Of a stretch of DNA of 64,000 bases, positions 18,452-64,000 are shown piece after piece. Source of the DNA: Octopus sinensis (taxonomy: Eukaryota); the NCBI RefSeq assembly GCF_006345805.1, contig NC_043016.1, positions 17,546,001 through 17,610,000 of the forward strand. Direction: 5' to 3'. Position 1 is the stretch's first letter. Every line of letters begins with the position of its first letter. A program made the position numbers and the translations under genes. The notes below the pieces were generated by a model. The model ran no database searches. It was not told the DNA's origin and saw only the letters and a program-made list of their open reading frames with translations.

Positions 18452-18704
18452 CAAGGATTGCAATCACTTCGTCGTCTTGAATAACTTCAAGAGATCCAGT
18501 GACCACAAAACATAATGAGTCTAAACTTTCTCCTTGATGATAGATGAGATCACCCGGTGCACTATGAGTCATCGTGAAATGCATGGCTAGAGCTCGCAGA
18601 CAGCCGTCGCTTGCCAATCGGAAAGCCGGATGTTCGCAAAAGACTTTCCGATTCAAATGAACACAGATGTCGGCTTTCATATCTTTTGGGCAATAATTCA
18701 ATAC
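18452..18704 (-). CDS. eag: Eag exon: C-linker/CNBHD ([22 protein letters not shown]...[13 protein letters not shown])
   Basis: Near-identical to Eag-family [18 protein letters not shown] and [17 protein letters not shown]. Acceptor cattAG at 18706-18705, donor GTaagt at 18451. 253 nt, continues GIDANK in phase 0. Confidence 0.97.
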
Positions 18705-44014: not shown

Positions 44015-44330
44015 AGGTGGCTGCCCCCTCGTTATCGAGTATGGCCATTGTACGAAGCTTAATCAATGTTGTTATCGTGCAATTCCTGTGCATGTTATCC
44101 CAGTTACCTGAGTTACCTTCTCCTAGGAGGATACTCTAACACATTTTGAATGCATTCTCTGATGCTTGCACTGCCTTAGGATTGACAGTCAATCTCAAGA
44201 AAACTGTTGTCATGCATCAACCTGCCCCTGGTAAGCAGTATAGTGTACCAAATATCTATGTGTATGGTAAACGGCTTGATGCAGTTGATCAGTTTGTCTA
44301 CCTGGGAAGCACTGTTAATAGATATAGCAA
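44015..44330. mobile_element. Deleted RTE derivative (44015-44140, -) abutting an inverted RTE RT fragment (44141-44328, +)
   Basis: Same 3' terminus as 42643 and 43203; plus-strand AFSDACTALGLTVNLKKTVVMHQP...DQFVYLGS. Confidence 0.78.
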
Positions 44331-44756
44331 ACATACATAGATGCATACATGCATACACGCATACTTACATATATGCATACATACATACATGCATAATACA
44401 TAGAGACATACATACAAGCATATATACATGCATGTATACATACATGCATACCATACATGCATGCATACATACCCACATGCATACATACATACATACATAA
44501 TACAAACATACATGCATATATATACACAGACATATATGCATGCATACATACACATATTGATGCATGCATTCATACACATATACACACAAGCATACATGCA
44601 TACATACATGTATACATCCGTATACACATACATACATATATACATACATATGTACATCCTTACTTACATACTTACATATGTATACATACGTACGCATACA
44701 TACATACATACATACATACATACATACATACATACATACATACATACATACATACA

Positions 44757-57690: not shown

Positions 57691-57696
57691 AAATTT

Positions 57697-57871
57697 ATTC
57701 TGTTGGGGTTGTCCTCCGAGATCGAAACGAAGTTTTTATTGTTATGATTGTTGTTACTATTATTATTAGCGCTAACAACTACACTATTTCTATTAGCGCT
57801 AATAATAATAGTAACAACAATCATAACAATAAAAACTTCGTTTCGATCTCGGAGGACAACCCCAACAGAAT
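57697..57871. repeat. Perfect 79-bp inverted repeat, 17-nt spacer
   Basis: 57697-57775 is the exact reverse complement of 57793-57871. Confidence 0.97.
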
Positions 57872-58530
57872 TAAAGGAATACTTGTAGAATGTACCAGTG
57901 AAGATCTCAATAAAATGTAAGCACAACAGAACTGATATAATGTTTTGGAAGAGAAAAGAGAAACTGTGTACTGCTGTTGAAATTATCTGCCCAACGGATG
58001 TTAACATAAAGCTGAAGATCAGTGAAAAAGAGAACACCTATACTGAACTATTGAGAAATCTGCAGTTACTCAATCCAGATTATAAGTTCAAGTTTATACC
58101 TGTAATTCTTGGGGCCCTGAGATATGTAACACACTGCCTAAATACCAATCTTGAGAAATTAGGCTTCTCAAAACCAGAGAAAGCTAATTCGAAGACTAAA
58201 GATCCAATCCATCACTGGAACTGTAAAAATCTGTAGAACTTTCCAGAAGTTTATCATTTAAATATACATGAGTATGTCTAGATATGCAAATATATGAAGA
58301 ATAAGACATATTTAAAACAAAGCAAACAAATCTGCACGTATATATGCATGCATGCATACATACATACATACATACATACATACATACATACATACATACA
58401 TACATACCTACATACCTACATACATACATACAAAAATATCCTGTGTTTGATGTTGAAATTCCAATGAAGGAACCTTGGATCTTGGTTAGGAACCGGTTCT
58501 CTCTCTATTGGCAAGAAATCTTGAAATAAA
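57872..58530 (+). mobile_element. R4/Dong-like restriction-like endonuclease (RLE) 3' fragment with 3' UTR
   Basis: KHNRTDIMFW...C..VEI.CP.D.NI..K..EK..TY..L...L...YKFKFIPVILGAL. Confidence 0.72.
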
Positions 58531-58547
58531 CTGAATTATGACATACA

Positions 58548-58581
<34 letters not shown>

Positions 58582-58689
58582 CATACATACATATACAAAC
58601 ACACATTCATACATACACACATACATAAATGCATACACACATACATATATACACACATATATACATACATAGTACATACATATATGTTT

Positions 58690-59130
58690 GGGAATAAGTT
58701 TAGCATCCATACGGATGACGTGTCCTGCCCATCGCAATTGGTTGCTATTGAGAAGTTATTCAGTAGAACGAACTTCCTGTTTGGCTAAGAATGTCAGTAT
58801 TACGTGTGTTTAATTTCCCGCTTATGCTTAAGATGTGTCTCAGACATTTCGATGGATGCGTTCAAGTGTTTGGATATGGCAAACTTAAGTTGTCCAGGTT
58901 TCTGAGGAATACAGAAGAGATGAGAGGACAAAAGTATAGACCATAACTTTTGTCTCAGTTTTTATTTGGCGCTGTGGCTAAATTATGGATTCCTGTTGTT
59001 TGTGCAAAGGTATCTCAGTATCTGAATTTCCGCAAGTATTAACATAATTTCAAAGGTGTTCAAAGGATTGTACAGTCTTTAGTGATGTACCTTAATGGTT
59101 ATGTGAGAATTAGTTTTTACATTTCCCGGA
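58690..59130 (-). mobile_element. Decayed RTE LINE fragment
   Basis: CLRHILSI and RWAGHVIRM...IPK motifs; adjacent (TACA)n. Confidence 0.65.
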
Positions 59131-59499
59131 GAAGGTTGATGTGATACGACTATTTGTTTCAAATTTAATGTCAAATCACGCGCACACACATATACACACG
59201 CATACCTTCATACGTACACACATACATGCATAAAATCTCATTTTCGTTCACAAAAAGGACGAAAAGAGTGCTGAATATGTCGTAGAACATGTAAACAACA
59301 CTTCAAAAGGATTCAGGTACTTTGAGTTTCATGGTGTATTTGAAAATTTGTATACACTTAGCTCTCAGTTCTTAAACAAATCCTCAAGGTGTGTTCATTT
59401 GGCAAAATAATACACACACACACAAATATACATATATACATACATACATAATACGTACACACACACACACACACACAAACACACACATACACACACATA

Positions 59500-59815
59500 T
59501 ATAAGTGAAAAGGGTAAATTGAACTTGCCTTGAGGAGTGGAATATCTAACGTTTCGGATTCCGGATTCAATCCTTCGTCAGGGGGCAGAGGAAAAGAGAA
59601 GAAAAAGAGGAAAAAGTATACATCCTCTCAGCATGAAAACCTGACTGCAAGTGAGAAGATGTAAACCCTGTTTGACTTTTTCTCTTTTTCTTCTCGTTTT
59701 TTTTTCTGCCCCCTGACGAAGGATTGAATCCGAAACGTTGGATATTCCACTCCTCAAGGCAAGTTCACTTTTTTCTATATTTTTCAAGTCCCTTTCACTT
59801 TTTTTATATTTTATC
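59500..59815. mobile_element. Second head-to-head palindromic element with a hammerhead motif in each arm
   Basis: gaacttgccttgaggagtggaatatc..acgtttcggattc...cttcgtcaggggg is inverted to cccctgacgaaggattgaatccgaaacgttggatattccactcctcaaggcaagttc. CTGACGA at 59581-59575 (-) and 59713-59719 (+). Confidence 0.8.
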
Positions 59816-59842
59816 AAGTCTTGCGACGCAGAGCTACTGGAT

Positions 59843-59878
<36 letters not shown>

Positions 59879-60225
59879 ATATATATATATTATATATTAT
59901 ATATGTATATATAATATATATGTATATATATATGTGTGTGTGTGTGTGTGTATCTGTGCGTTTGTGTGTGTGTGTGATCTGTGCGTTTGTGCGTGATTTT
60001 TCCAACAAATCGGTAGATAGTTACTTCAAAGTTTGGACTATGTAACCGGTGGATAAATATTTATATGAAGTTGTTAGATAAATGTAGAATCTGTGACTAC
60101 ATGAATAAAAGGTTTATATAAAACTCTTTTATTTTCGTTATTTTTCCGGTTTTAAAATAATTGAAAACTTTTCGTAACAAAGAAAAATTTGTTTAAAAAG
60201 TGAACCCATAAGATTTATACTATAC

Positions 60226-60425
60226 CTTATTTGCATCAATCCCCTTACTGATGGCCCATGATGAAACTATGTAATCCATAACTCTCTCGCTAAGGCCTTC
60301 GGGTATGTCATGTATTTTCATGAATTCCCTGACGCTGTTAAGCATCTCATGATATCTTGCTGAATTAGCGTAGAACTGTTGAAATATTGTCGTCACATTA
60401 CTGAAGATTGTTGCATATAACAACG
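60226..60425 (-). CDS. eag: Eag K+ channel exon: end of S6 and C-linker ([67 protein letters not shown])
   Basis: Translation matches Eag/KCNH1 S6-C-linker motifs ([26 protein letters not shown]). Acceptor ttttccAG at 60427-60426, donor GTatag at 60225. 200 nt, phase 1 in, phase 0 out. Confidence 0.96.
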
Positions 60426-61133
60426 CTGGAAAACAGAGAAAAAACACATGATATTTATTTGGAATAATTCACTTCGTACACGCATTTAGAACTATAATTT
60501 CAACATCGACATTACTTTTAGATATTTTGAAAAAATATATATTTAATAAGCAATTTCAATAAAACATGAAAAAGAAATTTGGTAACATTTTGTTCTATAC
60601 TTCACCATTTCAAAATTTTGAATTGAAAAATAAACTTGCATTCTGTTCTGCACTTCTGTAAACCTTACAATATGTTATGAATATCAATTTATCGATTTAA
60701 TCTATTTTCTGTATTCATTTAACTTAAATTTTGTGATACAAATAACCCGTTCCGTGTCAACCTTGATTAACCATTTATTGTGTCTGTTCAGACGACACAC
60801 CCTTCTAATTCCAGCATGCTACCGTGTATTTTAAACACAAAATTCTAAAATTCGTCACTAGCTTCAGCTTTTATACATTCATTTTATTATTAATGAAGAT
60901 ATTCATCTACGATTAACAATTGGTAATACGATAATTTTCCATTGATTAAATCTGTGAGTTTTATTAGCAATTTTTCTGCCTAACAGCAATTCTTCTGCCT
61001 AAAAATCACAAATATAGGATAAATTTTCCCTCACTTATTCTGACTTAGAACTATACTGATATGAGGCATCCATCTATCCATCCATTAATGGATAGACACC
61101 TTTGTATGTCTGTCTACACACACACACACATTC

Positions 61134-61420
61134 TTTTGCCGAACCGCTAAGTGACGGGGATGTAAACACACCAGCATCGGTTGTCAAGCAATGCTAGGGG
61201 TGACAAACACAGACACACAAACACATATACACACACATATATATATATATACATATATACGACAGGCTTCTTTCAGTTTCCGTCTACCAAATCCACTCAC
61301 AAGGCATTGGTCGGCCCGGGGCTATAGCAGAAGACACTTGCCCAAGATGCCACGCAGTGGGACTGAACCCGGAACCATGTGGTTGGTTAGTAAGCTACTT
61401 ACCACACAGCCACTCCTGCG
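61134..61420 (-). mobile_element. SINE family A
   Basis: Reverse complement of the head and body of the 14720 copy. Confidence 0.88.
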
Positions 61421-61743
61421 CCTGTGTATATATGTGTATATATATGTGTATATGTACCCGCCCCACACGTACGTATACATATATGTTAGTATGAACGTGT
61501 GCACATATGCAGGTAGGTAGGTATGTTTGTAAGTATGTGTGTATATGTGTATGTATATATGTGTGTCTATGTATATATATATATTTATAAACATACATGT
61601 AAATATATATATGTTTATGCATCTAGCTACCTTCATTATTGTGTGTGTATATATATATGTATATGTGTGTGTGTATATATTATATATATATATATGTAAT
61701 ATATATATATATATAATATATATATATAATATATATATATATA

Positions 61744-61870
61744 TGAGTGGCTGTGTGGTAAGTAGCTTGCTTACCAACCACATGATTCTGGGTTCGTTCC
61801 CGCTAAGTGGCACCTTGGGCAAGTGTCTTCTACTATAGACCCGGGCCGATCAAGGCCTTGTGAGTGGATC
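61744..61870 (+). mobile_element. SINE family A, 5' part only
   Basis: gagtggctgtgtggtaagtagcttgcttaccaaccacatg...ggccttgtgagtggat. Confidence 0.85.
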
Positions 61871-63511: not shown

Positions 63512-64000
63512 TATTATTATTATTATATTAATATTTCATTATTATTATTGTTGTTATTATTATTATTATTATATTATCATCATTATTATCATTATTATTA
63601 TTAATATTTTATTATTATTATTATTATTATTTTATTATCATTATTATTATTATTATTATTAATATTTTATTATTATTATTGTTGTTATTATTATTATTAT
63701 TATATTATTATCATTATTATTATTATTATTATTAATATTTTATTATTATTATATTATTATTATTATATTATTATCATTATTATTATTATTATCATTATTA
63801 TTATTATATTATTATTAATATTTTATATTATTATTGTTATATTATATTATTATTAATATTTTATTATTATTATTGTTGTTATTATATTATTATATTATTA
63901 TTATTATTATCATATTTTATTATATTATTATTAATATTTTATTATTATTATTATTATATTATTATTAATATTTTATTATTATTATTATTATTATTATTAT
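62834..64000. repeat. Complex (ATT/TAT)n array, at least 1.17 kb, runs off the window end
   Basis: Direct reading; recurring attaatatttt, atc and gtt variants. Confidence 0.96.

Follow-up and report, generated by a model that had tools for sequence, protein, structure and literature searches.

Serine in place of the S6 glycine of an Eag-type potassium channel in Octopus sinensis and other sampled molluscs

The Eag-type (KCNH1/Kv10) potassium-channel gene of Octopus sinensis has a serine at the S6 position which is occupied by glycine in the Eag channels of other animals, and the same serine is present in all mollusc classes that were sampled. We consider it probable (about 0.85) that this residue is an old, inherited feature of molluscs, kept by selection in an ordinary Eag channel, and that the codon can be explained without RNA editing. 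The serine would be a genomically fixed substitution of single origin, acquired no later than the last common ancestor that unites gastropods, bivalves and cephalopods. The octopus protein represents natural variation in a channel that is already known, and no earlier description of serine at this "invariant" S6 glycine across the sampled mollusc classes was found.

The channel gene and its S6 exon

The window, which is the whole 64,000-nt stretch of DNA analysed here, contains, by unambiguous orthology of its encoded protein, the 3′ part of the Octopus sinensis/vulgaris gene for an Eag-type (KCNH1/Kv10) potassium channel. This gene is an ordinary member of the Eag/Kv10 group, and a RefSeq annotation of it already exists. 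Its features in the window are as follows:

60226–60425, minus strand: coding exon of the C-terminal half of S6 and the C-linker, 200 nt, ending in GIDANK
60400–60402, minus strand: serine codon AGT in S6 (I-F-S-N-V), read directly
60295–60297, minus strand: glycine codon GGC in IPEGLSERV of the C-linker, equivalent to human KCNH1 G504
18452–18704, minus strand: end of the C-linker and first part of the cyclic-nucleotide-binding homology domain, cNBHD (VLNYCPKDM...VIAIL-G), from tblastn and splice sites
7367–7563, minus strand: second part of the cNBHD, with LTYNLR, from tblastn and splice sites
2717–4153, minus strand: last coding exon, with the post-cNBHD region, a long low-complexity tail and a C-terminal coiled-coil-like segment; stop codon TAA at 2719–2717

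The splice sites of the S6 exon (60425–60226) are canonical by direct reading, with the acceptor ttttccag|CG at 60426/60425 and the donor AAG|gtatag at 60226/60225. The exon is entered in phase 1 and left in phase 0, and the first base of its initial alanine codon is supplied by the preceding exon, beyond the window. The intron that precedes ALLY has the same position in the mollusc relatives, as judged from exon comparison, while the intron on the 3′ side of the exon is about 41.5 kb long. The three further exons were located by tblastn with human KCNH1, which served as a probe only, and their splice sites (18704–18452, 7563–7367 and 4153–2717) were read directly from the DNA. A second, mutually exclusive S6 exon encoding glycine was searched for, and none was present within the 64-kb window.

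The spliced product of the window is 695 amino acids long and 100% identical to the O. sinensis protein XP_029648873.1. It is also 100% identical to an O. vulgaris model over 544 amino acids, and 99% identical to the KCNH1 isoforms of O. bimaculoides, from which it differs at seven residues. The Pfam cNMP_binding domain was detected in this product (E = 3.4e-12, 46.6 bits with a cut-off of 27.5). The Ion_trans and Ion_trans_2 domains are present in the RefSeq model of the gene, and both of them, together with PAS_9 and PAS, in the full-length model of O. bimaculoides, which has 99% identity to the window product where the two overlap. The PAS domain, voltage sensor and pore are encoded by exons further upstream, past position 64000, and are therefore absent from the window; in O. 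bimaculoides the gene is about 429 kb long. The best matches in the PDB were KCNH1 (323 bits) and KCNH5 (316 bits), as compared with about 204 bits for KCNH2. The octopus protein was the reciprocal best match of the vertebrate KCNH1/5 structures, and named Eag/KCNH1 orthologues from many phyla were among the matches of the homology searches.

The earlier note had described a serine in place of the conserved S6 glycine, and the reading of the DNA bears this out, because positions 60402, 60401 and 60400 give A-G-T in frame on the minus strand. The surrounding coding strand reads GCA ACA ATC TTC AGT AAT GTG ACG (A-T-I-F-S-N-V-T). The A at 60402 has C (60403) as its 5′ neighbour and G as its 3′ neighbour, which confirms the C-A-G context that had been pointed out. 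The site corresponds to S478 of O. bimaculoides, to G469 (962-amino acid isoform) or G496 (989-amino acid isoform) of human KCNH1, and to G657 of hERG. Six known variant positions served as a check on this numbering, and the proposed equivalence to the F656-G657 pair of hERG held in the alignment.

Several other features of the locus were recorded. An assembly gap of 100 N occupies 7817–7916; it is intronic and, read in the direction of the gene, precedes the exon 7563–7367 by about 250 nt. At 44074–44379, on the plus strand, an ORF fragment that resembles reverse transcriptase is degenerate and interrupted by an in-frame stop codon, and its match to Pfam RVT_1 (E = 0.005) does not reach the curated cut-off. 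It is probably a decayed LINE, which lies within the 41.5-kb intron in antisense to the gene. The S6 exon is flanked at 58300–59990 and 61180–61830 by dense TA/CA/TG microsatellites and by SINE-like copies (translated motif ...EPGTMWLVSKLLTTQPL...), and these give many of the 1016 inverted-repeat pairs. One SINE-like pair, formed by 61291–61415 and 61745–61869, has 125-nt arms that are 89% complementary and separated by 329 nt. It is intronic, about 0.9 kb upstream of the S6 exon and outside the exon itself, and could plausibly form intronic dsRNA, which is a substrate for hyper-editing. A near-perfect hairpin is formed by 57694–57775 and 57793–57874, with 82-nt arms, 99% complementarity and a 17-nt loop, in the large intron that follows the S6 exon.

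The same exon contains a second position with serine and glycine variants, the GGC codon at 60295–60297. This column is serine in O. bimaculoides, most molluscs, annelids and a nemertean, alanine in arthropods, and glycine in deuterostomes. Judged by sequence comparison, the glycine of the window reflects a genomic S-to-G change in the lineage leading to O. sinensis/vulgaris; the position is a variable one, and the change is separate from the S6 finding. This change could be either an edited A that became hard-wired to G, or a neutral change.

Serine in molluscs and glycine in other animals

The presence of glycine at this site elsewhere in Eag and KCNH channels had been stated in the earlier note for fly and human, and its conservation turned out to be stronger than was stated there. 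Glycine is present in all solved KCNH structures in the PDB. Among the best 120 full-length matches, 118 proteins contained S6, and these divided into 95 with glycine and 23 with serine. The glycine proteins, 58 with IFGNV and 37 with the arthropod-type IFGHV, account for all 95 non-mollusc Eag proteins among these matches, which come from nemerteans, annelids, a brachiopod, arthropods, echinoderms, hemichordates, amphioxus and vertebrates. The nearest outgroups, that is the nemerteans Lineus and Tubulanus, the annelids Owenia and Capitella, and the brachiopod Lingula, also carry glycine. The same residue was found in 146 of 146 KCNH-type alignments from a representative library at 50% identity. 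The only library cases with Ala, Ser, Thr or Tyr are not KCNH channels, as they were repeats of four-domain channels of about 2000 amino acids with 20–30% identity. An invariant glycine at this position is a non-curated feature, which does not define the family, and it is missing from the window and from all sampled molluscs. The serine leaves the gene inside the KCNH/Eag family because its orthology is unambiguous.

All 23 serine proteins among the best 120 matches read IFSNV. They comprise 21 named proteins from 21 mollusc species, a second Biomphalaria entry, and one unnamed metaclust entry. The named species belong to the following genera:

Cephalopod: Octopus
Gastropods: Haliotis, Littorina, Batillaria, Physella, Nucella, Biomphalaria, Pomacea, Gigantopelta, Patella, Lottia, Lymnaea
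Bivalves: Potamilus, Mizuhopecten, Mactra, Pinctada, Solemya, Mya, Mytilus, Dreissena, Tegillarca

Hence, the suggestion that a gate variant is fixed in the lineage is supported, but the lineage is the phylum Mollusca rather than the cephalopods, since serine was found in all sampled classes; the mollusc-wide statement covers octopus, gastropods and bivalves, with squid, cuttlefish and nautilus sequences outside the sample. The other mollusc Eag orthologues (Haliotis, Mizuhopecten, Biomphalaria, Lottia) share the S6 motif and the intron position with octopus, while they have A[NS]FAR where the octopus protein has ANSAR. When 18 molluscs were aligned with 19 other animals, five columns of the whole protein were diagnostic, and the serine/glycine column of S6 was the only one of them invariant on both sides.

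The four other columns that separate molluscs are at positions 164, 525, 550 and 573 of the human protein, which are 173, 534, 559 and 582 of O. bimaculoides. A column before the transmembrane core has T in molluscs and A/V elsewhere, and a column at the end of the C-linker has A/I/V in molluscs and Q/S/T elsewhere. The remaining two columns are in the cNBHD; one has C/L/M in molluscs and K/N/S in the others, and the second has T in molluscs and mixed residues in the others.

The codons of the serine were compared in genomic homologues of the exon with the same intron position, the taxa of which were inferred from amino acid identity to named proteins:

AGT: the octopus window
AGC: two gastropod-like exons
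TCC: one exon 100% identical to Mactra
TCC: another exon, matching Gigantopelta, Physella and Mya equally at 98.5%
TCA: two distinct pteriomorph-bivalve-like exons, with 100% amino acid identity to Mytilus and Tegillarca

A-to-I editing of TCN serine codons cannot yield glycine. The use of both AGY and TCN codons, while the serine itself stays, implies selection for serine, and the uneditable TCN codons in mollusc exons suggest that serine itself has been selected since the molluscan stem. The residue would thus have been retained from its origin onwards by selection for serine as such.

RNA editing and other explanations

The main rival explanation is that octopus ADAR edits the A at 60402 in some transcripts (AGU to IGU, read as Gly), giving a mix of serine and glycine channels which could be tuned, for example by temperature. 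AGT is one of the two serine codons convertible to glycine, its C-A-G context is permissive, and glycine evidently fits the fold in every other animal. Additionally, squid recoding favors the creation of glycine and of residues seen in other species (PMC4384741). The octopus site is similar to the A-to-I Ser-to-Gly sites of coleoids and insects (auto-editing S>G of insect Adar; K+ channels of squid and octopus) in having an AGY serine codon in a permissive context, and in being part of a coleoid neural ion-channel transcript. It is different from them in that neither evidence of G in RNA nor, within the window, a supporting duplex was found, and in that the unedited serine is deeply conserved within the phylum. 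The serine is ancestral for molluscs and in bivalves is held by uneditable TCN codons, which argues against editing as its explanation. Serine shared with non-editing molluscs, combined with unedited RNA, had been named in the earlier note as an observation that would refute its claim, and the first part of this, the shared serine, is indeed found in gastropod and bivalve sequences.

The RNA structure around the site gave no indication of an editing substrate. The local fold of 501 nt around the exon had a z-score of −0.9 and was no more stable than shuffled sequences. The best duplex partner of the 61 nt around the site in 45 kb of pre-mRNA reached −34.8 kcal/mol and was weaker than the best partners of shuffled targets, with a mean of −38.4 kcal/mol. 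A scan of the window for inverted repeats found none that touched the S6 exon, and the nearby pairs were intronic microsatellite or SINE sequences. Hence, the editing-complementary sequence that had been proposed for the flanking introns was sought in the window and did not emerge above chance. These scans covered the sequence of the window and not the exons and introns further upstream, and cephalopod editing sites can use weak structures.

The evolutionary class of such an edit also bears on its probability. An edit is restorative when it brings back the residue that was ancestral in the lineage (PMC8382921; framework of Jiang & Zhang and Shoshan et al.), while diversifying sites are less common than restorative ones and are edited more weakly (PMC8382921). 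Serine, and not glycine, is common to gastropods, bivalves and octopus. An S-to-G edit would be diversifying, because glycine is not ancestral within molluscs, and it would belong to the rarer and more weakly edited class. This suggests that, in a cephalopod, an "editable" AGT codon at a conserved glycine can be taken as evidence of recoding only if glycine is present in the outgroup molluscs. Transcript or site-table evidence for editing was not found: a query spanning the junctions of three exons retrieved no cephalopod protein derived from a transcript, as length-matched fragments of other phyla were favored, the supplements of Shoshan 2021 and Alon 2015 contained no KCNH/eag entries, and no literature joining octopus, RNA editing and KCNH1 was found. 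Matches to "eag" in cephalopod ADAR papers were rejected, as the matched text was "Eagle's medium".

Taken together, these data do not support the proposal of the earlier note that editing tunes the gate between serine and glycine, because the serine is shared with molluscs that lack extensive recoding, is partly encoded by the uneditable TCA and TCC codons, and is not accompanied by an outstanding duplex. Editing of some octopus transcripts is unlikely, and a functionally exploited switch in coleoids, in which ADAR would return a regulated fraction of Eag transcripts to the pan-metazoan glycine gate, is less likely still. If such a switch were real, neurons would have two gating variants of Eag at a position of human channelopathy, and the difference between the uneditable TCN codons of bivalves and the editable AGY codons in the sampled gastropod and cephalopod exons could be viewed as a pre-adaptation.

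It is still less probable that the gene is a divergent, subfunctionalized Eag paralogue specific to molluscs, with a canonical glycine-type Eag located elsewhere in mollusc genomes. Exon-sized ORFs with IFGNV...QQMYSTTGR do exist at 76–78% identity, but their QQMYS..G motif matches that of annelids (Capitella, Owenia). Moreover, serine was found in every named mollusc protein with S6 among the best 120 full-length matches, and these matches included no glycine-type mollusc Eag, although they extended to E ~1e-139, well below the annelid and nemertean Eag proteins. This result argues against a hidden canonical paralogue, as does the reciprocal best match of the octopus protein with the vertebrate KCNH1/5 structures. 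Finally, an assembly or sequencing error, or a private polymorphism, with glycine as the true octopus residue, would need only a one-base G-to-A difference (GGT to AGT), but it can be practically dismissed, since serine is present in two octopus species, that is in O. bimaculoides (residue 478), which is an independent species and assembly, and in the RefSeq model of O. sinensis, possibly derived from the same assembly as the window, and in 20 other mollusc species, and the neighboring mollusc-typical QQFYA motif is present as well.

Relation to known channels and gating

The octopus protein with its inherited serine was compared with the vertebrate Eag1/Kv10.1 (KCNH1) and Eag2/Kv10.2 (KCNH5) channels of known structure (5K7L, 6PBX, 8EOW, 7YID), to which it is about 75% identical from the pore to the cNBHD (E = 4.5e-96). 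The octopus and vertebrate channels are alike in S6, the C-linker, the cNBHD with its LTYNL sequence, the post-cNBHD region and the C-terminal coiled-coil-like segment. LTYNL(R) is the intrinsic-ligand motif of Eag channels. They also share the upper "hinge" glycine, located nine residues upstream of the serine, which is kept in the full-length models of O. bimaculoides and O. sinensis (MMICG-ALLY). The octopus channel differs from the vertebrate ones by the serine in place of G469/G496, by phenylalanine in place of methionine nine residues later (QQFY versus QQMY), and by its long, divergent C-terminal tail.

The octopus channel would work as an ordinary Eag channel, in which a small polar side chain replaces glycine in the inner-helix bundle, and molluscs have presumably co-adapted around the serine. 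In hERG/Kv11.1 the homologous G657 directly follows the drug-binding, pore-lining F656, and I-F-G takes the position of P-V-P in Shaker. We know of no natural serine at hERG G657. The G657C mutant of hERG conducts, with a V1/2 shift of −37 mV and faster activation and deactivation, which is consistent with G657A (PMC2571969). According to PMC3440756, which cites Hardman 2007, the S6 glycines are not needed as hinges in hERG. The serine is expected to be compatible with function and to shift gating, because small substitutions of hERG G657 work, although this analogy is drawn from a different KCNH subfamily, and hERG, unlike octopus Eag, has fast inactivation and slow deactivation and was studied with cysteine and alanine rather than serine. 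On the other hand, the bulky charged substitutions G469R/G496R/G496E in Eag1, which are recurrent variants of Temple-Baraitser and Zimmermann-Laband syndromes, give no homomeric current. The loss of homomeric current with charged residues indicates that the site is sensitive, and the serine may matter more than "subtly". By this reasoning from related channels, the serine would most likely alter the voltage dependence and the speed of gating without abolishing function. No literature was found on the function or electrophysiology of mollusc Eag or on its serine substitution.

The S6 glycine is a site of human neurodevelopmental disease (KCNH1 G496R/E), and it adjoins the drug-binding F656 of hERG. 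The candidate properties for which the serine may be relevant are voltage dependence, the speed of deactivation and the access of drugs. The phylum-wide serine, kept for roughly half a billion years, would thus be a natural experiment on the role of this glycine in channel biophysics.
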